Assembly (NCBI GenBank): GCA_964035545.1
Contig: OZ037765.1
Span: 13,464,698 to 13,528,697 of the forward strand
Length of the DNA: 64,000 nucleotides
Direction: 5' to 3'
From: Bugula neritina
Taxonomy: Eukaryota > Animalia > Bryozoa
Shown here: piece by piece, positions 28,152 through 49,626 of the stretch
Layout: each line of letters opens with the position of its first letter
How positions within the stretch are numbered: the stretch's first letter is position 1
Translations under genes and position numbers: made by a program
The notes under the pieces: model-generated
What the model was told of the DNA's origin: nothing
The model's input: only the letters and a program-made list of their open reading frames with translations
Database searches by the model: none

Positions 28152-31100
28152 ATGAATGATAGCTCCATGGCTATGACAATGGTTAGTAAGACTAAAAGTA
28201 AAAACTAAAAGTAAATCAAAATTTATTTTGGGTTTTTAATTTACTTGCAGTTACTGTAAGTGTAAGTTCAAGTTGTCAGTGTTGCTATTAGATTTAGTAT
28301 TACTATTACTATTGGTTTTATTGTCAGTAATAATACTACTATTAGTATTAGTAATTAGTCATGCAGAAAATACAACTATGGTGCCACAACCAATACAATT
28401 GGAATTAAATTCAATATTAAATAATAAATTAGTTATTACTAATTATATTTTTATAATGCTATTAATTTTACCAATAGTAATACTTATGCTAATAGTAAAT
28501 ATAATAGCTTGTAAGTAATGAAAATATTGATAATTAGTATTATTCTGTAGTGTATGGGTATGTCATTTTCAATTTGCTTTGCTAAATTAGTATTACTATT
28601 ACTATTACTATAACTCTTAGACTTAGTAATACTATAACTAATAGTATTAGAATATAATTTTAATATTTGATATTGGTTTTGAAATATAAATATTACTATT
28701 GTCTACTACTAATGGTGTCATCCCAGATAGACGCTTCCCAGTTAGACGCTAGGCTAAATTTCCCACTTGGAGGCTTCTCAGTTAGACGTTAGTTATATGT
28801 TTTAGTACAATATAATTATATGTATGTTATGTATTTTATGTACAATTTATTTGAATATTATTGAAATATATGTATATTTAAATAAATTTGAATCAGCTGT
28901 TTGCTATTTAGCACATAAATTCCTTTGACATGCATTAACTTATTAATTTTGCATTTTGTTATTTGAAAAAATAATAGTTCAATAAGAAGTATTCATTAAA
29001 GATAATGACTATTCTTAATGTATTCCTGTTTGTTGTCTCACACAAATTTATGAAAATTGGAATAATATTATTCCAGATAATTCATATTAACTATTATTTC
29101 ATGTTTAGCAATCAATGCAGCAACTATAAATTCATATATAGGTATATTACTGTATATATCGCACCAGAACAAAGAATAGCGTCTAAATGGGAAAAGTCCA
29201 AGTGGACAGCGTCTAACTGGGAAGCATCTATCTGGGATGAAACCATACTAATAGACTAACTTTAAGTATTCGTTTAAATTATACTATTAGCAACTTTACT
29301 ATCACCAGCCCTAGGAGTAGGACTGTTACTATACTATTAGTTTTAAGAAGGTTACTATTACCATGTGTTTAGAGCTTTAGTATTTGAAATTAATATTGTG
29401 TTCCATTTACTTGTAAAAGTATTCTATGTATGTGCTGTAGACAACAACCAAGTTGGCCATCACTTTTGGAGTTCTTGCTGTTGGTTCATTAGTTGTGATA
29501 GTTTTAAAAAAACTCATCAACAGGAAACCACCCAAAACTTTGCTTGATCCTAACGTTAAAGTACAATTGAAACTCATTGAAAAAGAGGTAAGGCTTAAAA
29601 ATTAAAGATATTTTCCTCAATATTGTTTCTCATCTATTACATGTTTATTAGGTTTCCTATTGTTACCGGGATTTTTTTGTGATCAATTTTATAACAAAAT
29701 TCATACAATAATTGTTATCTATTTAAAATCATTACTATTGAATAAATTTTTATATAAGGTAATATTTCGATTTGTTTAGTATGTAATTGAATATATATAT
29801 AATCATGAACGGAGTAACACCTAGTTTTAGTTTAATAGAATTTTTGAAGGGGTTGTATGCTTAGCCAAATTTTAAGAATTTAGGTAGACGCATTAGTAAG
29901 CCGAAATAATTTTATCGCAGTAATAAGCTCTTTATATACTGCTCACATTTGCTAACAAAACTTGATAGTTTTTATAGCAATAAAATGCATATCTTTAGGT
30001 GTGGGAAAATCAAGAATGCATCACTATAGTAGTTCACCTGCTAACAAGTAGTTAGAGCACTCATTGCATAGAAGTTATTTGCATAAGATAAATTGAGATG
30101 CTGGTATTTTAGCTTGCCACAACATTTGAAGCAGAAAAACTCAACATTGACAAATCATGTTTTGGTTAATTATCTTGTGTATGCTTTGAGTTGATGTGTG
30201 AATAGACTATGTTGGATGTTTGCTTTGATCTGATATTTAGTTAATGGTTTGCTGTGCACACATATGCATATATTTATTCTCAGTAATTTGTTTTTTGTAA
30301 AGCATGCTTATAATTTTTCTGTTCTGTCTTTAGGAAATCAGTCATGATACAAGAAGATTTAGGTTTGCTCTGCCTTCGCCTAACCACTGCTTTGGTCTGC
30401 CCATTGGTAATATTATTACATAATCTTCAACTGTTTTTTTACCCTTTGATAACGTTAACTCATGGTATTTAGTTTGTTTTTTGTATAGGACAATTCAAAA
30501 TCTAAATAGGATGCTTACAATGTAGGCATTCTCTTGTACTGTCAAAACTTGGAATTTTTGCATTGAAATAATATGTTGATTTGTCAATTATGCTGTCTTA
30601 GTGGGGGTGCCAACATGCAAAAATGGGCGGGTGGAGCACATCAATACTAACCTTTGTTGCTATATATCACTGCAAAGCCAACATTCTACTGATCTCAGAT
30701 CTGCAAGTACCTTTTTTGTATCTGGGGGGGTTCTCTCGTGAGAGGGGTGGATATACAGGGGTTTAGCATTTTTCAAGGGGGGACTATGGAACTCTAAATA
30801 TTTAATTTTCTGAGTAGTTTAAGTTTGACATTAAAAATATTTTCAAGGAATGTTGTACACATATGAAACTTTCTCTAACAAAAGTTTTGACCGAAAATAA
30901 AAAAGTGGGCGGAGCCTATAATATGACAAACTACTTTTTTGCATATACCGGATATTCTCTAAACTGCTACTTTTCTGTTCTAGCATTTAGAATGTTGATT
31001 TTTGGTATGAAAATACTCTATTGTGTTCTAATAATGCTCTCCGGTTTTCATTACATTCTGAACTATATAACATATTTCCCAACCATGACAAATAAAAAAC

Positions 31101-34100
31101 ATAAAACGGGAGTTATCTCCTCCGTTAAAAATTATTGCATTTCTACCCAATAATATTGCTCTTTGTTGATAGGAACAACATCAGCATGATAAAAATGTAT
31201 TCTTAGTGTATTTATATTAGCTTATTGACTTATTTTGAATAATTGATTACGATCAATACTATTAAGTATTAATATTCAATATTTACTGTATAAATTGAGT
31301 GTCAGCAATAATTAACAGACCACTAATATTCGATTTTTTTATCCATAAGTATAGTAACATAAAATATGGTTCATAAAAAAGTAATATTATGATTTCAGCA
31401 TCACAAGCAATTACTATGCTCTTTTATATCAGATATTGGTAGACATTTGTAATTGTATTTATTTATAAATAAGATAGTATTTAAAATTTTAATTTACAAT
31501 AGATCAAGCTTTATTACAAAGTTTTGTTATCTCTAGCGTTTATATACCAAATTAAATATATTATAATTCTTCATCAGAACTGCATTTGTTGCCATCATCA
31601 TCATAATCAGGCTCTTTGTTTGAAAAAGAAGACTGGCCACTTTTGTTGTTGCAATCGAAACATTCACATAAACCACAGCATTTCATCATCAGGCGCTTGC
31701 ATTTGCATGCTTTACTCTTACAGCCTGCTTTTTTGCATTTACATGCTGTTAAAATCACATCTGCGTTGCTTTCAAAATCATATTTTATTGGAGTCAAGTT
31801 AGTATCCCAACCATGGTCAAAAATTGGCTGGTGAAGTAAAATAGGTGTAAAAGCAAGTTGCCAAAGTATAACTTGATAATTGGCTCGTTTCACGTGATAT
31901 TCTAGGGAATTCCTACTAGGTGGTAGCTGTGCTTCACTGGAGACATTTTTTAAAGCCAATATTTTATATCTTGCTTCAGTGATATCATCATAGGCACCAT
32001 ATAGGTTGGAGACAAATCATTCACACTCTAAGTATGTTTCTTCTGATACTGGGGACCAATCATTAGAACCTAAAGACAGATTATAGCTTTCCTTTTCAAG
32101 TACCTCCAAAGCACGCTTTTTAGATATTCGGAAGATAAAACTTACTGAGTCACAACCTGTAAGTGCATGGAGTGATAATAGATTCTTGAGAACTTTTTGT
32201 AGATTTTTTTGGCTGATTCAAAAAGAGATATATATCTTCTGTGACTCCCCATTCCAACGAAGATTACTACATCTTTATTAGCCTGCTCAGTTAAAACATT
32301 ACTAAGATGATGTTAAGCGCAATAATAGCAACATCGGTATCTACTGATCTTATTACTACCAAATCGTAATCACTCAGTGCATCAGCTGCATGAAGGATTA
32401 ATCTCGTGTCTGCTTCATCATGATTGGATTTCAATTTGTTACAATTTTAACGATAATGGTTTTGCAGAACACAGACTTCTTTGGCGCTACACACTAAAGA
32501 TGTACCAGCTGGAATTTTCTCAATATGTCTACTCCATGCACCTTCACTATGTAATCTACCAACTCATTTTTGTTGTGAATATTGCTCAGAAAAGCACTCC
32601 AGTTTTTAGGAACAGGCAGGTTGTTATGAATAATGGAAATAGATCACATCTATTGGGCACCCCGTCTAATACGCTCTTGTGCTTTAATTGATGTTTCAGA
32701 ATACACGTCAAACACTACATCAACCCTTGTATATCCTTTGCCACATTCAAGAAATATTTCCAACATCTTCAGAGCATAGCTATAAAAAGTGCCTGATGTT
32801 TTTGTCGAGTGAAGTATGCACATACCATCAATAATGATCGATTTGTTGGTGGACAGTTGACTATCATCATTGGAGACCCTGTTTCCAAGATATTTCTGTT
32901 CCAAAATATGCATTAGTTGCAATTTGCATGTTTTTCTCATCTGTCTGTTTTCAGTAAATAGAGCAAGAGGAATGGGTCCAATTTCTTTCTCTAGAACTGT
33001 ATGCAAATCTTTGGCACTTTTGGCACTTATGAGAAGTTTAGCAAATGATATTTTAGGAACATTTGGTTTAATGGCCGGTTGAAGTGATTTAGCCACAAAG
33101 TCAAAGGAAGGGATTTTAAGCCGGTGAATAGCAGTGTAAAATGGTTTTATTGTATTCAAAAGTCTATCTTGAAAAAACTTTTGAGCCATTTCTCCTCCCT
33201 GAGCCATAGCAGTCATTATTGACAAGAAGGTCTTCGCATCGGGACTTACTCCAGTAGCAATATTAATCAGTTCAGTTGAAGTATTGCTAAACAACTTAAC
33301 ATCAAACTGCTGCAATGTAAAAAGAATTGCTTGTGTATCAATCTCATCCGTCATAGTTGTAATGATTGTGTCTTCCTTGTGTAGTGTTGATGACTGTGAG
33401 GCTATTTGGCAAAAATCCTTTTGCAAAGAAAGCAGTTGGGCTCTGATATGACTAGTTAAGAACCATTTTGTCCGAGCTTCTTCATGGTTGCTAATGCCAA
33501 TAATGCCTCCAGATGTTTTACTGCCTCGATTCAAAGTTTGCTCCAAGACCTGATCTGGAGCCCCATACCTGCAATTTTTTTTCCTGTCCTGTTTACGGTG
33601 AATGAACCCTTTGCAAACATTCCATAAACTTCTGGAGTAGATTCAGGCAAATTTAGCATATCAATAAGGTATATAGGCAGCCACCTTAAGTAGTTTGTGC
33701 GATCATACGCAAAAAAATACTGGTAACATTGCCTGCATACTGTCCAAATAAAATTGCCAGTTGCCAGTACGCTCAGCTCAAATAAATCCCAACATGGCTT
33801 CTACTGCATGAAGGTAGGAATTCCAGAACATTGAAAGGTTAGATTTTAATTTAGTATCAGAATCAAACTTTTTTATAGCAGTAGCAACTTTATCTGCAAC
33901 AGTGGTCCATTCACGCAAGTTATCATCAATAGAAATACGTATGATGAGACTCTAATGGGTCAAACTGATCATTTTATTGAAGCCATTCCGAAAGAGATTT
34001 TAGTTTCTGCCTTGATATTGCCTCATACAAAATCTTGTGTGCCCGTACACTTCTGTTATAATGCTTACCACATAGCACCTGTTTCACTGTAACTTCAGAA

Positions 34101-37100
34101 TATATATCACTGTGTACAAGAACTTGGGCTAGGCCGCTTGATTTTACCATTTTGCCAAGTGCTGCCATGTAATTCATCAAGATATGAAAACCGCCCATTC
34201 GAATTATTGTGTTTGAAAATTCAGTTGGTTTGTTCCATTGAATCTCTTTGGCAATCTTGTAGATAGCTTGGTCAAATGTAATTACTGAATGTTTCTGATT
34301 TAAAACTTTCATAGTTTTTTTTAGCTGCAGAAGGATTGTATAAATTGTTGATGGATCTGTTGATGGTGCATTAATCATTGGGCAATACCCAATGACTGAT
34401 CTTTTATTATCTTCTGTGGCAACCAAATTTCTTACATTAAAGCTACTCCAGCTGGGGCAGTTATGTGTAGAAGGACTTATATCCAATTGAAATAGTTTGA
34501 TTGGGGCAAGTCTTGCCAATAGCCATGCTGTATTTAGATTACATGAATCCTCAAGTGACTTTTTCATATTCAGCAATGTCTCTTGACTAAGTTTTGTGAT
34601 AAAATATGATTTTGAAAGCAACGCAGATGTGATTTTAACAGCATGTAAATGCAAAAAAGCAGGCTGTAAGAGTAAAGCATGCAAATGCAAGCGCCTGATG
34701 ATGAAATGCTGTGGTTTATGTGAATGTTTCGATTGCAACAACAAAAGTGGCCAGTCTTCTTTTTCAAACAAAGAGCCTGATTATGATGATGATGGCAACA
34801 AACGCAGTTCTGATGAAGAATTATAATATATTTAATTTGGTATATAAACGCTAGAGATAACAAAACTTTGTAATAAAGCTTGATCTATTGTAAATTAAAA
34901 TTTTAAATACTATCTTATTTATAAATAAATACAATTACAAATGTCTACCAATATCTGATATAAAAGAGCATAGTAATTGCTTGTGATGCTGAAATCATAA
35001 TATTACTTATACAGTAAATATTGAATATTAATACTTAATAGTATTGATCGTAATCAATTATTCAAAATAAGTCAATAAGCTAATATAAATACACTAAGAA
35101 TACATTTTTATCATGCTGATGTTGTTCCTATCAACAAAGAGCAATATTATTGGGTAGAAATGCAATAATTTTTAACGGAGGAGATAACTCCCGTTTTATG
35201 TTTTTTATTTGTCATGGTTGGGAAATATGTTATATAGTTCAGAATGTAATGAAAACCGGAGAGCATTATTAGAACACAATAGAGTATTTTCATACCAAAA
35301 ATCAACATTCTAAATGCTAGAACAGAAAAGTAGCAGTTTAGAGAATATCCGGTATATGCAAAAAAGTAGTTTGTCATATTATAGGCTCCGCCCACTTTTT
35401 TATTTTCGGTCAAAACTTTTGTTAGAGAAAGTTTCATATGTGTACAACATTCCTTGAAAATATTTTTAATGTCAAACTTAAACTACTCAGAAAATTAAAT
35501 ATTTAGAGTTCCATAGTCCCCCCTTGAAAAATGCTGAACCCCTGTATATCCACCCCTCTCACGAGAGAACCCCCCCAGATACAAAAAAGGTACTTGCAGA
35601 TCTGAGATCAGTAGAATGTTGGCTTTGCAGTGATATATAGCAACAAAGGTTAGTATTGATGTGCTCCACCCGCCCATTTTTGCATGTTGGCACCCCCACT
35701 ATCTGTGTCTAATGATGGATAAATGTTTATGGAACTTTAGGCACTCATATATATATGAGCTCACTGGTTGGCAACAAGCTCGTAGTGAGACCCTATACTC
35801 CAGTTTCTAGTGATGATGATTTAGGCTATGTGGACTTTATCATTAAGGTAAACGGACACCAACATTCGACAATAATATATAATATTTTCCAAGGCGTAGA
35901 GTACAATGATTCTTTAGTACCTTTATTTACCTAAATTTCAAATAAAACTCCGAAGTCAACAATCATCTGATCATTGCATAAATATGTTCATTACTGATAT
36001 AGGTAATGTTAATTTAAAATACCAAAGTTCATTACTGAAATGTATCATTACTAATATCAATATATAGAGTAGTGCAATCTCTGAAATACTGTGTTGTGAA
36101 ATAAATAGTCAATAGTATTGTGTCTGTTAGTTACCTATAAAGTTTTATATGTTCACATTTTACATATGTAAAGGTTGAATCAAATTACTCAGAAAAAATT
36201 ATTTGAAAATCCTTTTCTTTGCTAGCAATATTTTTTCAGCCTATGTGGTGGATAAGTAGATATCAGCTGTACATCTCGTGACATATCTCCTTTTCACTCA
36301 CTCAGCGAGTCACAGATATTGAATGTAAAGTTATTGTTCGTAGTCCAATGGCATATTTTCAATTGTTTATATGCTGTAGGTTTACTTCAAAAATGTTCAC
36401 CCTAAATTTCCCGAAGGTGGGAAAATGTCCCAGTATTTGAATGACATGGCTATAGGAGACTTCATGGACATGAGGGGTCCCAGTGGACTCTGCACATATG
36501 AGGGTAAAGGGCTGTTTGCAATCAAGCCTGACAAGAAAAGCCAGCCAGCTATGAGACAAGTGAAGAAAGTGGGAATGATTGCTGGGGGAACTGGTAAGTT
36601 TCCAGCTTATAAAATATTATATATGTTGTATGTTATGTTAGTTACTGCTGACAGCAAAGACTGCACAATTCAGTTTAGTAGCAATTATATATGTGTTTAC
36701 ACGGCCATGTTGTTTCATGTGGTGTGTGAGAGATAAGAACTAACCCCTGGAGTTCTGTTCAGGTATGTATAACATGAGATGCTTCACTAAAGTACTGCCA
36801 AAAAATTTTGTATGGGTTAATAGTCGCCATCCCTATGAGGACCCCTGATGTAAAGGGTTTTTGTAAGCAGGCTAAGGATGTTTTCACTATTGCGGCAAAG
36901 GTTCAATCGTAACTGAATGCCCTTCCTAACGTCAACAATGGCCTTTACTGGGGATCGAACCATTGACTTAATGTTTACTAGCTCGGTGCTTTAACCCCTA
37001 GACAACGGCTGCTCCCCAAACTAGTCCCTAAATAGACCATGTAAAACTCAGCCAATCAGCGAAGTGTACCAGGTCAATGTCTTACCATTGTAACTGATAT

Positions 37101-40100
37101 ATAATTCTGCAAGTTCAATTGCAAAATGCATGCTTCTAGAAGCTAGTTGTGCAACTTTTTTTTCATGCATTATTTAATTTAAAATCTTAAATTGATGACT
37201 CTTGAAATGATTTTTTAAAATGTCTAAATTAAGGGTTTATAAAATGCTATTAAAAATTGCATGTCTAGAAAAATGACCTGGTACACTTTTGCAACTTAAG
37301 GCCAATTATTACATAACTGCCAGCTTAGTAGTTATTTGTTGTTGCAGCTTGAATGGGTTATTGTTTAGCATTGGAAGCTTGCAGTAAACATCTGTGAATT
37401 TGGTACATGACTTTGATTGGCTGGTTTTTGAATGGCCCTTTAGTATATGCATCTGGATGGCTGGTTAGTGTAGACTCCGCCTACATCTAGCTAATGTACA
37501 GTAGCCAATCCACAGTAGTGTTACAAAATTTCTGTTTAACAAATGAAATATTCTGGTCATTTGTTTTGTACTTTACAATAGTAAATATTCTATTCAACTA
37601 GAATTTTATTGTATGTAAGCCATGGGAACTACCAAGAGGTTAAATCAACCACCCATGCTAGTAATATTGTAGCTCACAGTAATAGCAAGTCCACACCATA
37701 TAAATATACACATAAGCTATTATGTGCAGCTTATGAATGCTGAAATGACCCCATTTCTTACCTTCAATTTGAAAAAAATTGTATTACATATTCTGCCACT
37801 TCTGCACCAGGAACTTGTTTTCCTTTCAAATTTTGAAAATAGTAGGCAGTTTCTGCAGCAGTCAACTGCATCCACAATAAACAACGTAAGCTTTCAAATA
37901 AACTATAAATATATGAAATAGTAATGTGGAAACAATGTAATTTATTTATTGCTATGATGAAAAATTACAAGAATATTATATAAAAGCTAGATATAAATTT
38001 CTAGTGAAATGGCACAGGTAAAAAATAACACATTTTTACTTCAAATTCTAAATTTCATCAGTCACCAATAGTGGCTGTAGATTACAGAGAGCACAGCAAA
38101 CTATCATAATCTTGTCTAATAGAGGTGCCAACACCAAGTTCACACCTCCAGGACCATTTGAAATATTGAACTCCTTTATTCTTTTGATTGCTCTTTCCAC
38201 ATGGATTCGAAGGTTAGCAATCAACTTTGTTTGCAGTAACTGCATTTTAGTCATTTGCAAATGGCCTCTTTTCCCAGGTGGTATGGCTAACTTAGCTCCA
38301 GCGCCTATAAGTTCTTTTTCAATAAGAAAGCCTCTATCTGCCATAACCACATCACCTGGGTTTATGAAGTCTAAGAACCCAGAGTCATTCACTACACACT
38401 TGTCTGAGGCTCTACCTCCCATTCCATGCGAAATAAAGCAGATAGTGCCCCTGGGTGTAATTGCAACCAAATAATTGATGGTTTTGGTCTTTTTATACTC
38501 ACTCCATGTTAAAGATTGAGCCAGCTTTGATTGAGGCTTGCAAATGAATATTTCTGTGCAGTCTATAATGCACCCAATGTTAGCATATTGGCTTTGAAAG
38601 CTCAGAGGGATGTTCAGCTTTTCTCTTGTTGGAAAAACTATTAGATTGTTTAGTTCTCTTGCTAAAATATCTAATGTGTCTTTGAAGGTTTTGCCTGCTA
38701 GCAATCTAGAGATATAAAAAAGGCCAGCAAGCAATTGAAACTGTAAACCTTGACGCAGCTTCATCAAAGCCAATAAAAGTTTATCTTGTCCTGTCAACTT
38801 TTTTCTGAGAGTGAGAACTTTCATCTTCGGACATATAAATCTAAATATAGTAAACAAAGAATGAAAATTAAATTATGATTCAAATTATAATGTATGTGCT
38901 AAATAAATTTTGTGCTTAGTTTGTATTCATTCAGCAGTTTATACCCTCTGGTAAGTAGCTTCAGTTATATTTTGCAAGAACTATGAAGTTCAAGAACTGC
39001 TAGTTAAAGGCTTGACCCAATATATCACCATCCAAACAGAATGTAATATGTGTCAACGTGTGTTATGTAATATTGTAACAGTACATAATAAGCTAGCTGT
39101 CTGAGTACATGCTTTGAATAGAGTCATGAGTTTAAACAAATACTGTTGACAAACAATTATTACTTCATTTTATAATTATACTATAACTAATTCAAACCCA
39201 TATTATTTCTAGAATAGCATTTAATAATGTTTGTGAATAAGTGAAACTAGTAACAAGTGTAAACCATTTTAGATTTAAACACTGAGTTAGTTTCAGCTAA
39301 AAATTAGATTAGGAGGCCACTTTTGATAAGCTTTAAAATAACCAAGGAAAATTTAAGTCAAAACAATTTACTTTTCCTGGAGAAAGTGAGTCAATTTTTC
39401 CACAAATAAAAGACTGCTGCTTGTTTAATAAAAACCCTAAACTAAATAAGTCAAAGCATACAGATGACCACTGTGGTATTTATGAATATCTTACATAAAA
39501 CAACATCTTTAATAAAAAATGTATGAATGATGCACTCACACTGCAACAAATTTAAATAAAATGACAGTTTTACTACACATCAAATTTAATAAATGTACAA
39601 ATTTTTTAGCATAGTGAGACTTGCATTGTTTATTTGTAATAAACCATAGTCTATCTTTGCAATAAGAAAATCATAATTTTTACCTTGCTAAAAAACAGTA
39701 TAGAGAACGTGTAGGTATTCCAGTATAGAATTTAGTTCGCTCATCTGTAGTGGTGAAAGTTTTAAAAACTTTTACTTTTTCAATAGTTGCTTTTTGTTTA
39801 AACGTGGAACTTTTTGAGCCTTTTCTTCCAACTTGTGATTTTCGTCTATCAATAGAATGTGCAGATCTTTTTTTCTGAGTAGTTGATGATTCTGGTAACT
39901 CAGTTACTTCTGATGAAGTCTGACTATGAGGATGGCTGCCAGATGAGTTCTGTTGCTCTATATCAGCTGACTCTGTTGAAGACGTTTTCTGTTCGATTCC
40001 TTCACATGTTTCATTAAAACCACTGTTTTTTTGTGTGTCTTACATTATATGCTTTAGTGCGTTGGTAACCCAAATGAAGGGTTGGAGTTGGATTTTGCTC

Positions 40101-42825
40101 AGTGGGCTGACCATCCTTATGATTATGATTATGATAGTCTGCTATGCTCTCTGTATTCTACAGCCACTATTGGTGATTGATGAAATTAAGAATTTGAAGT
40201 AAAAATGTGTTATTTTCACCTGTGCCATTTTACTAGAAATCTATATCTAGCTTTTATATAATATTCTTGTAATTTTTCATCATAGCAATGAATAAATTAC
40301 ATTGTTTCCACACTAATATTTCATATATTTATAGTTTATTTGAAAGCTTACGTTGTTTATTGTGGATGCAGTTGACTGCTGCAGAAACTGCCTACTATTT
40401 TCAAAATTTAAAAGGAAAACAAATTCTTGGTGCAGAAGTGACAGAATATGTAATACATTTTTTTCAAATCGAAAGTAAGAAATGGGGTCATTTCAGCATT
40501 CATAAGCTGCACATAATAGCTTATGTGTATATTTATATGGTATGGACTTGCTATTACTGCAAGCAACAATATTATTACCAGCATGGTAGTTCCCATGGCT
40601 TACATACAATAAAATTCTAGTTGAATAGAATATTTACTATTGTAAAGTACAAAACAAATGACCAGAATATTTCATTTGTTAAACAGAAATTTTGTAACAC
40701 TACTGTGGATTGGCTACTGTACATTAGCTAGATGTAGGCGGAGTCTACACTAACCAGCCATCCAGATGCATATACTAAAGGGCCATTCAAAAACCAGCCA
40801 ATCAAAGTCATGTACCAAATTCACAGATGTTTACTGCAAGCTTCCAATGCTAAACAATAACCCATTCAAGCTGCAACAACAAATAACTACTAAGCTGGCA
40901 GTTATGTAATAATTGGCCTTAAGTTGCAAAAGTGTACCAGGTCATTTTTCTAGACATGCAATTTTTAATAGCATTTTATAAACCCTTAATTTAGACATTT
41001 TAAAAATCATTTCAAGAGTCATCAATTTAAGATTTTAAATTAAATAATGCATAAAAAAAAAGTTGCACAACTAGCTTCTAGAAGCATGCATTTTGCAATT
41101 GAACTTGCAGAATTATATATCAGTTACAATGGTAAGACATTGACCTGGTACACTTCGCTGATTGGCTGAGTTTTACATGGTCTATTGCTGCGAAACTGGT
41201 TTTGTAATTTGGGAGCTCATATATTCAGTTTGCATTCTGCCATTTGAGGTAATGTGTAAAATGCATGTTGATTGTAATTTTCATTTCTTGAAAACATCAT
41301 TATATTTAATTTGAGAATTTTTGCACCTTTTTTAACATAAAAGTTAGGTTTTCATATTTTGGTGCAATCAGCTAGCAGCATTCAGTTTATATTACGTGAT
41401 GTGCTATCAGCTTATTTCTGGTTCTCCAGGTATAACCCCAATGCTGCAGTTGATCAAGGATGTCCTTAAGCGCCCTGAAGACAAAACTAAACTTAGCCTA
41501 ATTTTTGCTAATCAGGTAAGAAATTTTTAAACGTTCTAAATTTAAAATGTTTTAGCAGACATCAGGTTTCTCTAATACATTAACTGTAACTCAAACGAGC
41601 TCTGCAGAATTTAAAACTTTGATATGTTATAAAAAATTAGATTTCTGTTTTTTCCATAGCTGTGGATAAAGGTATGTCTAATATTTTTAGACTGAGGAAG
41701 ACATTTTGCTACGGGATGAATTGGAAGGCTTGGCTGAAACTCACAAAGACCGCTTTACCCTCCACTATACTTTGGATCGTCCGAAAGAAGGTAGTTGGGC
41801 ACTGCCTGCATGTACTTGTTCGTGTATATTATTTTGGCAGTTTCAATAATTTTAGCGTTGATATTAATTGGGTCCTTTTTCAGTTTATGCTGAATCTATT
41901 ATTTATACGCAGTATAAGATCAAAGACTGCCATAACATTATGCAGGCTGATGATAGATTGTGCTATAATTGTTAAGTATTGGCTAAGTCAGGGTTTGACT
42001 TTAATGTGTTTGTTGTAATACATATATTTTGCTACTGAACGGTAATTCATTCATTATATCGGTGGTTTATTTTTGCTACTCCGCTAATTGTCTAATTCCT
42101 TATATTTTGTATACATTGAAAGAAGGTAGTTGGGCACTGCATGCATGTACTTGATCGTGTATATTATTTTGGCAGTTTCAATAATTTTAGCATTGATATT
42201 AATTGGGTTCTTTTTCAGTTTATGCTGAATCTATTATTTATACGCAGTATAAGATCAAAGAATGCCATAACATTATGCAGGCTGATGATAGATTGTGCTA
42301 TAATTGTTGAGTATTGGCTAAGTCAGGGTTTCACTTTAGTGTGTTTGTTGTAATACATATATTTTGCTACTGAACGATATTTTCATTTATTATATCGGTG
42401 GTTTATTTTTGCTACTCCGCTAATTGTCTAATTCCTTATATTTTGTATACATTGATAGCATTATTTGATTTCATAGTAGTTTTCAACTTTTTATGTTGTT
42501 ATAGTTTTTTAAGGTAATAGAAAAATAGTTGATTATGACAAACCAGATAGTCCATTTTATTGCCTGTAGGAAGTTGGTGTGTACCATATAGTTGTAAAAC
42601 CAATCATACCTCTATGATTTCATTAGTTGAGTCTTCATTAATAATATTGCAGATTGGAAGTACAGTAAAGGCTTCATCAGTGCCGACATGATCAAAGACC
42701 ATTTACCTTCCCCAGCTGCTGACACACTCATCATAATGTGTGGACCTCCCCCCATGATCAATTTTGCGTGTAACCCTAACCTTGACAAGCTGGGTTACGC
42801 CGACCATCTCAGATTTGCCTATTGA
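28152..42825 (+). CDS. CYB5R3: NADH-cytochrome b5 reductase (CYB5R3-like), 8 coding exons, about 309 aa
   Basis: Exons 28152-28181 (least certain), 29441-29587, 30334-30406, 35741-35847, 36380-36593, 41430-41515, 41691-41790, 42653-42825 (930 nt, in frame). N-terminal membrane anchor, [23 protein letters not shown] (FAD), [35 protein letters not shown] (NADH), [14 protein letters not shown] at 43048. Confidence 0.93.
28714..29244. mobile_element. MITE with GG...CC termini and 15-bp subterminal units (Merlin/MULE-like)
   Basis: ggtgtcatcccagatagacgcttcccagttagacgct ... agcgtctaactgggaagcatctatctgggatgaaacc. Flanks ctactaat and atactaat (7/8 match). Confidence 0.75.
30599..35701 (-). mobile_element. 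Academ (AcademX-type) DNA transposon derivative, palindromic, in b5-reductase intron 3
   Basis: Termini TAGTGGGGGTGCC...GGCACCCCCACTA (YR..YR), 3-bp TSD TCT (30596-30598 and 35702-35704). Inverted arms 30599-31788 and 34599-35701. Internal coding remnants show transposase + XPG-like nuclease + Cys-rich finger. Confidence 0.85.
31561..34598 (-). pseudogene. Disrupted Academ transposase-XPG nuclease-Cys finger gene, 5'-truncated
   Basis: Transposase motifs [67 protein letters not shown]-like motifs [48 protein letters not shown] and C-terminal [23 protein letters not shown]. Several stops and frameshifts between the ORF fragments. Confidence 0.85.
36820..37017 (-). mobile_element. tRNA-derived SINE, copy D
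   Basis: Minus strand ggggagcagccgttgtctaggggttaaagc ... GGTTCGATCCCC (B box), core gttgacgttaggaagggcattcagttacg. Confidence 0.8.
37034..41183 (-). mobile_element. ISL2EU/PIF-Harbinger-type transposon derivative, palindromic, copy 1, in b5-reductase intron 5
   Basis: Termini AGACCATGTAAAACTCAGCC...GGCTGAGTTTTACATGGTCT; AT TSD within an aATt target. Arms 37034-38111 and 40127-41183. Confidence 0.88.
38048..40115 (-). pseudogene. THAP-tail + HTH + DDE_Tnp_4-type transposase, 5'-truncated, one intron
   Basis: Exon 39684-40115 ([17 protein letters not shown] = THAP C-terminal end; TKFYTGIPT), GT-AG intron 38841-39683, exon 38048-38840 ([31 protein letters not shown]). The frame is continuous after splicing, but the start codon and THAP zinc ligands are missing. 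Confidence 0.85.
41783..42453 (+). repeat. 335-bp tandem duplication covering the exon 7 donor site of the b5 reductase
   Basis: Units 41783-42117 and 42118-42453, both starting gaaagaagGTAGTTgggcactgc, with only scattered substitutions. Confidence 0.92.
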
Positions 42826-43251
42826 GTGTGTAGTCAGCAGATAAACATGTGAAACTTATTCACACTTATTCACACTTATTCACGAAACGATTTACCCTGC
42901 ATCAAAATGTAGGGTTGCTTGTGTTTGACTTGAACTTCTTGAATGACTGTAATGCATTTATTCTACAAAATCTTTAGTACTAATAGATTATTATGTCATT
43001 GTTATGTTATCATACTTGATTTTAAAATTTCAAATTGAAGCATACAAAATAAAATCATAGCCTTTTACAATTTGTAAGCTTCCATTATATTTTGGAGCAA
43101 ATCAGTGCACTTGTAGTACACAAATGCATTTGGGTAGCTATTTAAACATGAAGAAAATAAGGATACTAATTTTTATAAGAAAGTTTAATGCCTGCCCTGG
43201 AAGAAAGTGTAGGTCTTTATCGTTGGTTATTGGATTATCAATATAGCCAAT

Positions 43252-46200
43252 AGACCATGTAAAACTCAGCCAATCAGCGAAGTGTACCAGGTCAATGTCT
43301 TACCATTGTAACTGATATAAAATTCTGCAAGTTCAATTGCGAAATGCATGCTTTTAAAAGCTAGTTGTGCAACTTTTTTTTCATGCATTATTTAATTTCA
43401 TACCTTAAATTGATGACTCTTGAAATGAATTTTTAAAATGTCTAAATTAAGTGTTTATAAAATGCAATTGAAAATTTCATGTCTAGAAAAATGACCTGGT
43501 ACACTTTTGCAACTTAAGGCCAATTATTACATAACTGCCAGCTTAGTAGTTATTTGTTGTTGCAGCTTGAATGGGTTATTGTTTAGCATTGGAAGCTTGC
43601 AGTAAACATCTGTGAATTTGGTACATGACTTTGATTGGCTGGTTTTTGAATGGCCCTTTAGTATATGCATCTGGATGGCTAAGTAGTGTAGACTCCGCCT
43701 ACATCTAGCTAATGTACAGTAGCCAATCCACAGTAGTATTACAAAATTTCTGTTTAACAAATGAAATATTCTGGTCATTTGTCTTGTACTTTACAATAAT
43801 AAATATTCTATTCAACTAGAATTTTATTGTATGTGAGCCATGGGAATTACTAAGAGGTTAAATCAACCACCCATGCTAGTAATATTGTAGCTCGCAGTAA
43901 TAGCAAGTCCACACCATATAAATATACACATAAGCTATTATGTGCAGCTTATGAATGCTGAAATGACCCCATTTCTTACCTTCAATTTGAAAAAAATTGT
44001 ATTACATATTCTGCCACTTCTGCACCAGGAACTTGTTTTCCTTTTAAATTTTGAAAATAGTGGTCAGTTTCTGCAGCAGTCAACATTCACAATAAACAAC
44101 GTAAGCTTTCAAATAAACTATAAATATATGAAATATTAGTGTGGAAACAATGTAATTTATTCATTGCTATAATGAAAAATTATAAGAATATTATATAAAA
44201 GCTAGATATAGATTTCTAGTAAAATGGCACGGGTAAAAATAACACATTTTTACTTCAAATTCTAAATTTCATCAGTCACCAATGGTGGCTGTAGATTACA
44301 GAGAGCACAGCAAACTATCATAATCTTGTCTAATAGAGGTGCCAACACCAAGTTCACACTTCCAGGACCATTTAAAATATTGAACTCCTTTATTCCTTCG
44401 ATTGCTCTTTTGACATGGATTCGAAGGTTAGCAATCAACTTTGTTTGCAGTAACTGCATTTTAGTCATTTGCAAATGGCCTCTTTTCCCAGGTGGTATGG
44501 CCAACTTGGCTCCAGCGCCTATAAGTTCTTTTTCAATAAGAAAGCCTCTATCTGCCATAACCACATCACCTGAGTTTATGAAGTCTAAGAACCCAGAGTC
44601 ATTCACTACACACTTGTCTTAGGCTCTACCTCCCATTCCATGCGAAATAAAGCAAATAGTGCCCTTGGGTGTAATTGCAACCAAATAATTGATGGTGTTG
44701 GTCTTTTTATACTCACTCCATGTTAAAGATTGAGCCAGCTTTGATTGAGGCTTACAAATGAATATTTCTGTGCAGTCTATAATGCACCTAATGTTAGCAT
44801 ATTGGCTTTGAAAGCTCAGAGGAATGTTCAGCTTCTCTCTTGTTGGAAAAACTATTAGATTGTTTAGTTCTCTTGCTAAAATATCTAATGTGTCTTTGAA
44901 GGTTTTGCTTGCTAGCAATTTAGAGATATAAAAAAGGCCAGCAAGCATTTGAAACTGTAAGTCTTGACGCAGCTTCATCAAAGCCAATAAAAGTTTATCT
45001 TGTCCTGTTAACTTTTTTTCTGAAAGTGAGAACTTTCATCTTCGGACATATAAATCTAAATATAGTAAACAAAGAATGAAAATTAAATTATGATTCAAAT
45101 TATAATGTATGTGCTAAATAAATTTTGTGCTTAGTTTGTATTCATTCAGCAGTTTTTACCCTCTGGTAAGTAGCTTCAGTTATATTTTGCAAGAACTATG
45201 AAGTTCAAGAACTGCTAGTTGAAGCCTTGACCCAATATATCACCATCCAAACAGAATGTAATGTGTGTCAACATGTGTTACATAATACTGTAACAGTACA
45301 TAATAAGCTAGTTGTATAAATACATCCTTTGAATGAAGTCATGAGTTTAAACAAATACTGTGGACAAACAATTATTACTTCATTTTATAATTATACTATA
45401 ACTAATTCAAACCCATATTATTTCTAGAATAGCATTTAATAATGTTTGTGAATAAGTGAAACTAGTAACAAGTGTAAACCATTTTAGTTTTAAACACTGA
45501 CTTAGTTTCAACTAAAAATTAGATTAGGAGGCCACTTTTGATAAGCTTTAAAATAACCAAGGAAAATTTAAGCCAAAACAATTTACTTTTCCTGGAGAAA
45601 GTGAGTCAATTTGTCCACAAATAAAAGACTGCTGCTTGTTTAAATAAAACCCTAAACTAAATAAATCAAAGCATGCAGATGGCCACTGTGGTATTTATGA
45701 ATATCTTACATAAAACAACATCTTTAATAAGAAATGTATGAATGATACACTCATACTGCAACAAATTTAATTAAAATGACAGTTTTACTACACATCAAAT
45801 TTAATCAATGTAGAAATTTTAGCATAGTGAGACTTGCATTGTTTATTTGTAATAAACCATAGTTTATCTTTGCAATAAGAAAATCATAATTTTTACCTTG
45901 CTAAAAAATAGTATAGAGAACGTGTAGGAATTCCAGTATAGAATTTAGTTCGCTCATCTGTAGTGGTGAAAGTTTTAAAAACTTTTACTTTTTCAATAGT
46001 TGCTTTTTGTTTAAACGTGGAACTTTTTGAGCCTTTTCTTCCAACTTTTGATTTTCGTCTATCAATAGAATGTGCAGATCTTTTTTTCTGAGTAGTTGAT
46101 GTTTCTGGTAACTCAGTTACTTCTGATGAAGTCTGACTATGAGGATGGCTGTCAGATGAGTTCTGTTGCTCTATATCAGCTGACTCTGTTGAAGACGTTT

Positions 46201-47412
46201 TCTGTTCGCTTCTTTCACATGTTTCATTAAAACCACTGTTTTTTTTGTGCGTCTTACATTATATGCTTTAGTGCATTGGTAACCCAAATGAAGGGTTGGA
46301 GTTGGATTTTGCTCAGTGGGCTGACCATCCTTATGATTATGATAGTCTGCTGTGCTCTCTGTAATCTACAGCCACCATTGGTGACTGATGAAATTTAGAA
46401 TTTGAAGTAAAAATGTGTTATTTTTACCCGTGCCATTTTACTAGAAATCTATATCTAGCTTTAATTTATATAATATTCTTATAATTTTTCATTATAGCAA
46501 TGAATAAATTACATTGTTTCCACACTAATATTTCATATATTTATGGTTTATTTGAAAGCTTACGTTGTTTATTGTGAATGTTGACTGCTGCAGAAACTGA
46601 CCACTATTTTCAAAATTTAAAAGGAAAACAAGTTCCTGGTGCAGAAGTGGCAGAATATGTAATACAATTTTTTTCAAATTGAAGGTAAGAAATGGGGTCA
46701 TTTCAGCATTCATAAGCTGCACATAATAGCTTATGTGTATATTTATATGGTGTGGACTTGCTATTACTGCGAGCTACAATATTACTAGCATGGGTGGTTG
46801 ATTTAACCTCTTAGTAGTTCCCATGGCTCACATACAATAAAATTCTAGTTGAATAGAATATTTATTATTGTAAAGTACAAGACAAATGACCAGAATATTT
46901 CATTTGTTAAACAGAAATTTTGTAATACTACTGTGGATTGGCTACTGTACATTAGCTAGATGTAGGCGGAGTCTACACTACTTAGCCATCCAGATGCATA
47001 TACTAAAGGGCCATTCAAAAACCAGCCAATCAAAGTCATGTACCAAATTCACAGATGTTTACTGCAAGCTTCCAATGCTAAACAATAACCCATTCAAGCT
47101 GCAACAACAAATAACTACTAAGCTGGCAGTTATGTAATAATTGGCCTTAAGTTGCAAAAGTGTACCAGGTCATTTTTCTAGACATGAAATTTTCAATTGC
47201 ATTTTATAAACACTTAATTTAGACATTTTAAAAATTCATTTCAAGAGTCATCAATTTAAGGTATGAAATTAAATAATGCATGAAAAAAAAGTTGCACAAC
47301 TAGCTTTTAAAAGCATGCATTTCGCAATTGAACTTGCAGAATTTTATATCAGTTACAATGGTAAGACATTGACCTGGTACACTTCGCTGATTGGCTGAGT
47401 TTTACATGGTCT
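43252..47412 (-). mobile_element. ISL2EU/PIF-Harbinger-type transposon derivative, palindromic, copy 2
   Basis: Same termini and AT TSD in aATt. Arms 43252-44325 and 46335-47412. Same internal junction as copy 1. Confidence 0.88.
44262..46329 (-). pseudogene. Disrupted DDE_Tnp_4-type transposase of copy 2
   Basis: Collinear with copy 1, but with homopolymer frameshifts (about 45013 and 46240), a TAA at 44619 and the catalytic E changed to K (RIHVKRAI). Confidence 0.85.
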
Positions 47413-49626
47413 ATTATTGGAAGCACCGATGACTGGAATCATTTAGAACTCATTAATTAATAAAATTGTTCACTTCATATCATCATGTCCTTAAAGCAGT
47501 TGTAAATATAATAAAACAGTAAATGGGATTTTTAATGTAATATGCCTTTGATCATTATAGCATGACAACAGAGGCATACTCTTGACTTCCAGGAAAAGAG
47601 TTTCATTTAAGTAAATAAATGACTTCCACAGACACGTACATTAATACAAAGTCTATTAGTCTTCAAAGTTGTTGGTAAAGCACACAAATAATAAACATGA
47701 GCCACTATGAATAATTCACTTTTATTTCAGCTGTACTGGTAGAATTTAATAGAGTGAATACTGGCAAATTTTGTGTAGCCCAAGCAGTAATACTGTGATG
47801 GTTACAAAGTACCCAGAGAACTTGGGATTTAAATGGCCCCTTTTGCAAGATTTGAAATAATGAACATGTGTAACTGACACTAAACTAGAATATTTAATAA
47901 TGAGACAGTTATATTTCAGACCTTGAAAGCTAAAAAACAAATTTCAGAAATACATAAAACTACACACAAATTACACCAATTGCATTAAAGATTCCTTTTG
48001 GAATAATAAAGCAAAGTGCATGTTTTATTGCAAAAATAACCCAACATTTTCAAAATAAGAAAATCGGTTTAAGGTAGACTATGAAAAGTCATGCCCTTCG
48101 AGCCAAGTATTGGAATTTTTTGAAATCCAAAAAATATTGGCCAAAGTGGGCGTCACAAGCAACATTGTAAAGAAATGAAACTAAAAAACTACGAAATAAA
48201 CAAAATTAGCTATTTGAAACTATTTATAATCGCCAAAATTGAAAATGTTCCATTAATGAATGGAATATGTCCGAAAAATGTCACATTAGTTTGTAACAAA
48301 GATTCAACAACATATCTGTATATGGGTATTATATGAGCATAATATACATAACAGCCTACTTGTATATAACGCAATGTCATGCTTGTATGAAAGCCTATGT
48401 TATATACTAGAGTATATAAAAGCATAGAGTTAACAGCATACATAATGGCAGTAGCCCTAACAGATTGTACATACATATTTTGTCTAGACCCCCAAATTAA
48501 TATCCTGTATTATATTGCCTATACATGCATTTCTTATAAAATATAGGAAATCCAAATTCTAGTTTCATGAAGTTTTTTTGAGTAGGCTAACTATGAAAAG
48601 TAGGCGCATATTCTATGCAGTTTGTAATTATAACAAAATTGTCCTATAACTGCATAAACTAGGGCTTCTTATTTTTCCTTGGGCGCAGCTCCAGTTCACA
48701 TCAGCCCTAATAATAATAATAGTATATGAAACAACTTGAGTTTTGAATGCAAAATCAGAAATTTGAAAACAATGCAATCAGGTGACATACTAATGTACTA
48801 CCAAAAATTTGAAATATTTCATTAAACATATTAATCTAAATTAAGTAAAAATCATATCACTGTTATTTCAGCCAAAACTCTTATTTGTGCTTAACCGTGC
48901 TAATTTGTCATGCCTATTAGAATTATCCCTAAAATACAACGATCCGTGCAGCTAGCTGCTTCAGGATTTGTCTTCTCATCAAGAAAAAACAATGGATTTA
49001 TAAGAAAGATACTGTATTTTTACCAAAGTCCTGCATAATGTAAATTAATAATGACAAAATACAACTAAAATATTTTACCACTCAAGCCGTCCACTTATAC
49101 ATATGCTTTTATATTGTGTATAGTGTTTGCAACATTAATAATAGACTCGGGTGCGAGTGTGCTTGTTCATATAATAATGAAGTAGCAACAAAATATTTGT
49201 CTATACACCATCTTTAGTTAACCGATAGAGCTATGCTATGAAATTTTATTGTTTAAACTAAGCAGCCTTTTAAAGATAAGGGAGTTATATTACAGTGGTA
49301 ACAGTTTACATGCCATCTAATTTTCTGTAGTATAGTAAATCAATGAGGTATATTACATCATTGTAATAATCTTTGTAGTGTTTGTGATAGCACTAGCTAG
49401 GAACTTTATATTGCTCCTTGGAGTAATTGCAACTCCACTTCACAAACAACCAATATCATGCAGTCATCCTAGCTGATTTAAGTCATAGAACTATCATGAG
49501 GACTTGTATACAACTGGGTGAAAATAACTTAAAATGAGGATATCAACTATAAAGTCAGCAATTAATTCATCATTATGGTAGTTTTGGCTACTATCATGGA
49601 CAATAGCAATGCCATAATTCTGATAG

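Follow-up and report, generated by a model that had tools for sequence, protein, structure and literature searches.

Can the two ends of a cut-and-paste transposon rewrite one another after the element has formed, or does each end evolve on its own? The question is raised by a 64,000-nucleotide stretch of the Bugula neritina genome (hereafter the window; assembly GCA_964035545.1, contig OZ037765.1, positions 13,464,698 to 13,528,697), which holds two related copies, W1 and W2, of a transposon whose terminal inverted repeats (TIRs, or arms) are about 1,081 bp long. A first-pass annotation of this stretch had claimed that both arms of copy 1 share variants that both arms of copy 2 lack, and had proposed an active arm-to-arm copying process. 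Our analysis of the two copies and of their relatives elsewhere in the genome supports that proposal in a sporadic form: sequence has passed from one arm to the other, and has done so recurrently, in both directions, in patches, and independently of the transposition step. Sporadic gene conversion between the inverted arms of an element is very probably the explanation, and the family is a new instance of a known process, conversion between long inverted repeats, for which no new mechanism is needed.

Results

Arms of the two window copies agree by element

Each copy consists of a 2.0-kb single-copy core flanked by inverted arms of ~1,081 bp, and because the transposase exon ends ~60 nt within the left arm, the arms carry the 3' end of the transposase gene. 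The features of the two copies are listed here; all coordinates, here and below, are positions within the window (1 is its first letter) unless a contig is given.

37031-41186, minus strand: W1 (copy 1), 4,156 bp, bounded by AAT...ATT, with the transposase gene on the minus strand
37031-38111, plus strand: left arm of W1, 1,081 bp, containing the DDE exon's final ~60 nt with its stop codon
40127-41186, minus strand: right arm of W1, 1,060 bp, inverted; its inner part is the most diverged of the four arms
37031-37633, plus strand: homogenised tract in the left arm of W1, arm positions 1-603, differing from the right arm by 1 substitution and 1 single-base insertion-deletion (indel)
40585-41186, minus strand: homogenised tract in the right arm of W1, its limit being an 18-bp deletion between 40582 and 40583, relative to 37637-37654
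38051-38872, minus strand: open exon of W1, 274 amino acids, with complete DDE_Tnp_4 and HTH_Tnp_4
43249-47415, minus strand: W2 (copy 2), 4,167 bp, in the same orientation as W1, with unrelated flanks and from a different subclade
43249-44325, plus strand: left arm of W2
46335-47415, minus strand: right arm of W2, left-type at all left/right diagnostic sites but arm position 1069
44265-45035, minus strand: DDE/HTH exon of W2, broken by an in-frame stop at 44619-44621
38099 and 44313 (left arms), 40139 and 46347 (right arms): arm position 1069, 12 bp from the inner junction, A in the left arms and G, in arm orientation, in the right arms

Across their whole length W1 and W2 are 95.6% identical. 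They are two independent insertions; the possibility that they represent a tandem duplication was ruled out by their differing flanks and by their placement in different subclades.

When the four arms were aligned with MAFFT, 29 columns grouped them by element (26 substitutions and one 3-bp indel), one column grouped them by side, and none grouped them crosswise. Independent evolution of the arms predicts a number near zero for the first class, and the 29 columns are therefore far beyond chance. Each of the variant pairs that the first-pass annotation had listed as shared by both arms of one copy is present in this alignment, at arm positions 72, 93, 106/109, 151/153/155, 204, 218/222/229, 433-435, 836-838/842, and 1040, and the single by-side column is the very site about 12 bp from the inner junction (38099, 40139, 44313, 46347) that had been singled out as arm-specific.

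The implication that both copies are homogenised holds for W2 across the arm, and for W1 only across the outer 603 bp. The arms of W2 differ from each other by three substitutions and one 4-bp indel, whereas those of W1 are only 95.7% identical, being near-identical over arm positions 1-603 and separated beyond that point by about 25 substitutions and the 18-bp deletion, with 18 substitutions unique to the right arm, 17 of them counted inward of position 603 and absent from the other three arms. The switch from match to mismatch in W1 coincides exactly with the 18-bp deletion, and its longest run of matching sites, positions 141-603, has a permutation P of 0.0002.

Concerted arms across the family

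A pattern describing the element terminus matched the 216-Mb genome 98 times in forward and 97 times in reverse orientation, which corresponds to ~98 copies, and the family-wide analyses rest on 35 of these (the further copies bearing L numbers). The 35 comprise 17 full-length copies, or 16 when the near-duplicate pair L031/L032 is counted once, and about 18 copies of a 3.5-kb deletion form, which has lost left-arm positions 886-1081 together with 465 bp at the start of the core.

Over the outer 600 bp, an element's two arms differ by 0.5-0.8%, and left and right arms drawn from different elements differ by 1.6-2.3%. The same comparison, within elements and then left against right between elements, gives 2.0% and 4.0% for arm positions 601-740, 3.5% and 4.3% for 741-885, and 2.4% and 3.6% for 886-1081, some of these inner-segment differences being inflated by the alignment of indels, notably at the junction of the 3.5-kb deletion (~839-885). 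In the outer 600 bp, arms of different elements are equally distant whether compared left-left, right-right, or left-right. Arms that evolved independently could never be closer to each other than are same-side arms of different elements, and the data contradict independence on this point.

The same conclusion emerges at the level of individual comparisons. For all pairs of full-length elements, quartets of arms over the outer 600 bp gave 1175 by-element, 2 by-side, and 2 crosswise patterns, and over the inner part of the arm the counts were 582 by element and 160 by side. Over the outer 600 bp, 21 of 30 non-redundant elements had their own partner as the closest opposite arm, where ~1 would be expected; the rank and permutation tests used here ignore phylogenetic non-independence, and near-identical copies were removed for them. 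Among variants private to one element, 42 occur in both arms and 162 in one arm only, and since coincident independent mutation would give essentially no private variants of the first kind, the 42 point to transfer.

The first-pass annotation had predicted that a tree would group arms by element and not by side, and in a maximum likelihood tree of the 70 arms of the 35 copies W1, W2, and most other full-length copies do pair in this way: W1 (support 99/91), W2 (98/78), L062, L057, L060, L063, L064, L035, and L065 have their two arms together, and the clades of the arm tree are congruent with a tree of the single-copy core. A first tree of 26 elements had given an impression of grouping by side, which came from the 3.5-kb subfamily and from a few inner diagnostic sites, and which was reversed once the arm was segmented and full-length copies were added. 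Within the 3.5-kb subfamily, the inner parts of left arms do group with left and those of right arms with right, as would be expected of a recent burst from one progenitor whose arms had already diverged, and L040 alone (1 of about 14 copies) is converted.

A GENECONV-like run-length permutation, the other test proposed in the first-pass annotation, was significant for eleven elements (P = 0.0002-0.03) and not for the rest. For pairs homogenised throughout, such as W2 (P = 0.6), the test carries no information, the whole arm being one tract, and such cases rest on the comparison with other elements.

As a separate observation, divergence between elements is, family-wide, about half as great in the outer 600 bp (1.5-2.3%) as in the inner part of the arm (3.1-3.9%). 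Conversion within elements should not lower the divergence between them, and the low outer value suggests that the outer 600 bp is constrained, perhaps by transposase-binding sites, or differs in mutation rate.

Direction, tracts, and edges of the transfer

A few inner sites separate a left type from a right type and allow the direction of transfer to be read. Left-to-right transfer is seen in W2, L061, L062, and L063, whose right arms are left-type at every diagnostic site except 1069, as well as in two copies with shorter tracts: in L040 the right arm stays left-type at least as far as position 838 and is right-type from 915 on, in keeping with its homology ending at 885, and the right arm of L056 switches from left to right type between 838 and 915. 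The left arms of W2, L061-L063, L040, and L056 retain their own states, and because converted right arms accompany unchanged left arms, the transfer is non-reciprocal. Crossover, or flip-flop inversion, was considered as the cause of the shared states and is ruled out by these non-reciprocal transfers. Transfer in the opposite direction is seen in L057, L060, and L065, where both arms carry the right-type base at 1069. Both arms also carry the right-type TG at 837-838 in the W1/L031/L043 clade, a change that probably ran right to left as well.

The limits of the tracts vary, covering positions 1-603 in W1, 186-1064 in L063, up to 885 in L040, and up to a point between 838 and 915 in L056. Of these copies, L040 lies at G000:C1:33171639-33175123 and L063 at G000:C4:13967324-13971508. 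In the case of L063, the outer 182 bp is the only unconverted part and carries five private single-arm changes. Such variable and internal tracts indicate that the process is not anchored at the element ends.

At the other edge of the arm, all 16 full-length copies share one and the same inner junction, which bears out the earlier suggestion that it had a single origin. The companion suggestion, that homogenisation stops just short of the junction, stands for the 13 of 16 full-length copies in which position 1069 is unconverted and fails for the remaining 3, in which it has been converted right to left. The ratio of within-element to between-element divergence peaks, at 0.67, in the innermost 200 bp. 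The unconverted state of 1069 in 13 copies fits a need for flanking homology at the end of a tract, a barrier that is not absolute.

Just inside the right-arm junction lies a hexamer, ATAATC (40121-40126 in W1; the W2 junction is at 46334/46335), that is present as one or two units depending on the copy. Single and double forms each account for about half of the 16 full-length copies, making this a small tandem polymorphism situated where the inverted duplication first formed.

The direction of change showed no GC bias, with 23 weak-to-strong and 19 strong-to-weak changes among both-arm variants, compared with 82 and 78 among single-arm variants.

Transposition does not reset the arms

Four copies of the 3,496-bp deletion form are 0-1 bases apart over their 3,496 bp and have unrelated flanks, though a mere 32 kb separates two of them on one contig.

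G000:C4:15481412-15484907: L036
C3:10398582-10402077: L038
C6:4387953-4391448: L049
C4:15513209-15516704: L050

Copies so similar at different loci indicate that the family was mobile very recently. All four keep the identical 11 arm mismatches, and the mismatches between arms were likewise kept through transposition in the pairs L031/L032 and L041/L058. Since near-identical copies at unrelated loci keep the same mismatches, transposition does not reset the arms, as the first-pass annotation had maintained for cut-and-paste elements in general; new copies with identical ends, the signature of resynchronisation in the manner of long terminal repeats (LTRs), are not what these four show.

Nearly all minority states at the 29 columns distinguishing W1 from W2 recur in both arms of related copies elsewhere, those of W2 being common to L062 and, more deeply, to L061, L063, L057, and L060, and those of W1 to L031, L032, and L043. 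Only the states at 72, 490, and 603 are wholly private to W1, and none is private to W2; at 218, 816, and 1040 the W1 state is found in both arms only in W1, while single arms of other copies carry it. In L034, the sister of the W2 group in the core tree, several W2 states are present in the left arm only, and this copy catches the step before they were copied into the right arm. On this distribution of states, most W1/W2 differences were homogenised in ancestral copies and inherited through transposition, and at least six nested, successive transfers are needed on the W1 and W2 lineages. A simple two-repeat model applied to the counts of private variants gives, as a rough estimate good to an order of magnitude only, a per-site conversion rate ~200 times the point-mutation rate, which fits the observed arm divergence of 0.5-2%.

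Assignment to the ISL2EU group

The W1 exon at 38051-38872 matches DDE_Tnp_4 with E = 3e-44, over profile positions 1-158 of 158, and HTH_Tnp_4 with E = 2e-10. In all 35 copies, A-AT precedes the first base of the element and AT-T follows the final one, with flanks that vary beyond, although the AAT could formally be repeat sequence. ISL2EU elements use an A|AT|T target with duplication of AT (PMC4482050) and typically encode a YqaJ exonuclease (PMC4482050, PMC4122938). Like that group, which belongs to the PHIS superfamily (PMC4482050, PMC4122938), the present family has a DDE_Tnp_4 transposase with a helix-turn-helix (HTH) domain, and the borders of every copy fit an A|AT|T target; unlike it, the 4.16-kb copies have neither a THAP domain nor a YqaJ exonuclease gene, and their arms measure 1,081 bp. 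The earlier assignment to ISL2EU is thus reasonable as far as the transposase and the target go, while two of the parts usual for the group are missing from the 4.16-kb copies. A limited literature search returned no TIR lengths for ISL2EU families against which 1,081 bp could be ranked.

In the minus-strand open pieces upstream of the DDE exon, there was no Pfam match and no THAP-like zinc-finger motif by eye, and the 5' part of the transposase gene appears to be missing from the 4.16-kb form. Nor was a YqaJ frame found in the 2-kb internal region of the 4.16-kb copies, whereas YqaJ open frames occur at 9 loci elsewhere in the genome, which makes it likely that the 4.16-kb copies are derivatives mobilised in trans. 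W1 and W2 are probably one-gene, non-autonomous members of an ISL2EU-type (PHIS superfamily) cut-and-paste family. An unpaired terminus of the family lies at G000:C5:8897008, 5.8 kb upstream of an open YqaJ frame (301 amino acids; C5:8902827-8903306), and this locus may be a two-gene autonomous relative whose ends are the same.

Neighbouring repeats in the window

Between W1 and W2 there are two direct units of ~335 bp, at 41766-42122 and 42101-42458, which are 94-97% identical; this region (41766-42458) went unreported by Tandem Repeats Finder. Directly upstream is a second, unrelated element (30599-35701) with inverted arms of ~1.1-1.2 kb, at 30599-31788 and 34599-35701, that are 99.8% identical except for an ~85-bp indel. 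A Pfam scan of the frames of this element, including a 330-amino acid frame at 32653-33642 on the minus strand, gave no match.

Discussion

Conversion between arms as the favoured explanation

Taken together, the within-element similarity of the arms, the private variants found in both arms, and the non-reciprocal, bidirectional tracts are best accommodated if the 1,081-bp TIRs arose once and the arms then evolved partly in concert. One arm would occasionally be overwritten by the other, over a few hundred bp or up to its full length, through non-reciprocal homologous recombination, and the converted states would be inherited when the element transposes. The molecular route, with host enzymes as the agents, is one that we infer: most likely a nicked or broken arm would be repaired by the host, with the inverted arm close by serving as the template, and an alternative route would be a snap-back heteroduplex formed between the arms, in which mismatches are corrected.

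Several considerations weigh against this explanation or limit its reach. The arms are known from assembled sequence alone, and part of their identity could come from the assembly, an origin that such data cannot directly exclude. Coverage of 35 of the ~98 copies limits the case. Little conversion is seen in the inner arms of the young 3.5-kb subfamily, and the process is accordingly slow and sporadic and not continuous. The GC bias that is usual in many eukaryotic conversion systems is missing, in what is a small sample. Finally, break repair and heteroduplex correction would leave the same pattern, and the two routes are indistinguishable from sequence.

Among the other explanations, it is unlikely that homogenisation forms part of the mobility machinery itself, through end resection and resynthesis at excision or integration or through recombination driven by YqaJ. 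Such a link is made attractive by the YqaJ exonuclease that ISL2EU elements typically encode (PMC4482050, PMC4122938), by the YqaJ frames at 9 loci, one of them 5.8 kb from an unpaired family terminus, and by the outer 600 bp being the most uniform part of the arm. It is difficult to reconcile, however, with the four near-identical copies that transposed without resynchronising their 11 mismatches, and likewise with L031/L032 and L041/L058; moreover, the tracts are unanchored at the termini, the outer 182 bp of L063 alone being unconverted, and when homogenisation is scaled to between-element divergence it is about equal over positions 1-885. A related idea, which we regard as unlikely, is that the family itself keeps its kilobase arms, with the YqaJ of autonomous ISL2EU relatives stimulating arm-to-arm recombination; if true, arm homogeneity would be a trait produced by the element and not a by-product of host repair.

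One could also imagine that the right arm has been rebuilt repeatedly from the left by fold-back or template-switch duplication, since the right arm repeats the 3' end of the transposase gene in inverted form and most of the clear transfers at diagnostic sites go from left to right. We consider this very unlikely in light of the inner junction shared by all 16 full-length copies, of the right-to-left transfers (at 1069 in L057, L060, and L065, and probably at 837-838 in the W1/L031/L043 clade), and of the partial or internal tracts of W1, L063, and L056, which are unlike the product of a whole-arm rebuild.

An assembly or polishing artefact, in which reads from one arm corrected the other, is improbable in the extreme. 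Arms of 1 kb lying 2 kb apart can suffer cross-contamination during short-read polishing, yet the same homogenised haplotypes recur at independent loci (W2/L062; L057/L060) and follow the core phylogeny, many copies keep 10-25 arm differences, and position 1069 differs in arms that are otherwise identical. Cross-polishing, moreover, would not create variants that are in both arms of one copy and absent from all other copies.

Exchange between different copies, by ectopic conversion or recombination among the ~98 elements, is just as improbable as a main cause and may add noise: long-TIR families do form chimeric copies, as in Galileo (PMC3573991), and a few arms stand apart from their partners in the tree, such as the right arm of L034, which lies with short-form right arms, but the 42 private both-arm variants cannot come from another copy, and the arm clades are congruent with the tree of the internal region.

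Conversion between the arms of an element therefore remains the explanation we favour, and it has practical consequences. Independent evolution of the two ends cannot be taken for granted in a cut-and-paste transposon, a point for which the present copies offer site-level evidence. TIR-to-TIR identity cannot be used to date such insertions in the way that LTR identity is used, and arm identity alone is uninformative on how recently a copy moved. With ~98 copies and recent activity, the family is also a handy natural system in which the rate, tract length, and direction of inverted-repeat conversion can be studied in a marine invertebrate.

Comparison with known systems

The palindromes of the human Y chromosome and the inverted repeats of plastids undergo non-reciprocal transfer from arm to arm, with divergence persisting near the edge of homology. 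As in those systems, the arms described here are more alike than their age predicts; unlike them, homogenisation is much weaker and more sporadic, the arms differing by 0.5-2% in place of a few hundredths of a percent, and the repeat is mobile, so that converted states spread to new loci. The resemblance to LTR resynchronisation lies in ends that agree within a copy but vary from copy to copy, though LTRs are reset at each transposition by reverse transcription and the present arms are not.

In the bacterial insertion sequence ISWpi1, recombination between the inverted repeats made the left and right TIRs identical (PMC3004938). That system differs in being bacterial, in having very short TIRs, and in coupling the event to inversion of the transposase gene (PMC3004938), and no inversions were detected in the copies of the present family.

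The closest parallel is with Galileo, of the P superfamily, and the Foldback-like elements of Drosophila, whose TIRs reach kilobase length and are alike within a copy while copies and subfamilies differ (PMC3573991). The TIRs of one Galileo copy are 98-100% identical, and Marzo et al. (PMC3573991) proposed that one TIR is repaired from the other and suggested that long TIRs attract recombination and conversion. The bryozoan family belongs to a different superfamily, and its arms are without internal tandem repeats. Whereas transfer between arms was put forward as a model for Galileo (PMC3573991), here it can be followed site by site, with its direction, the limits of its tracts, and its independence from transposition.

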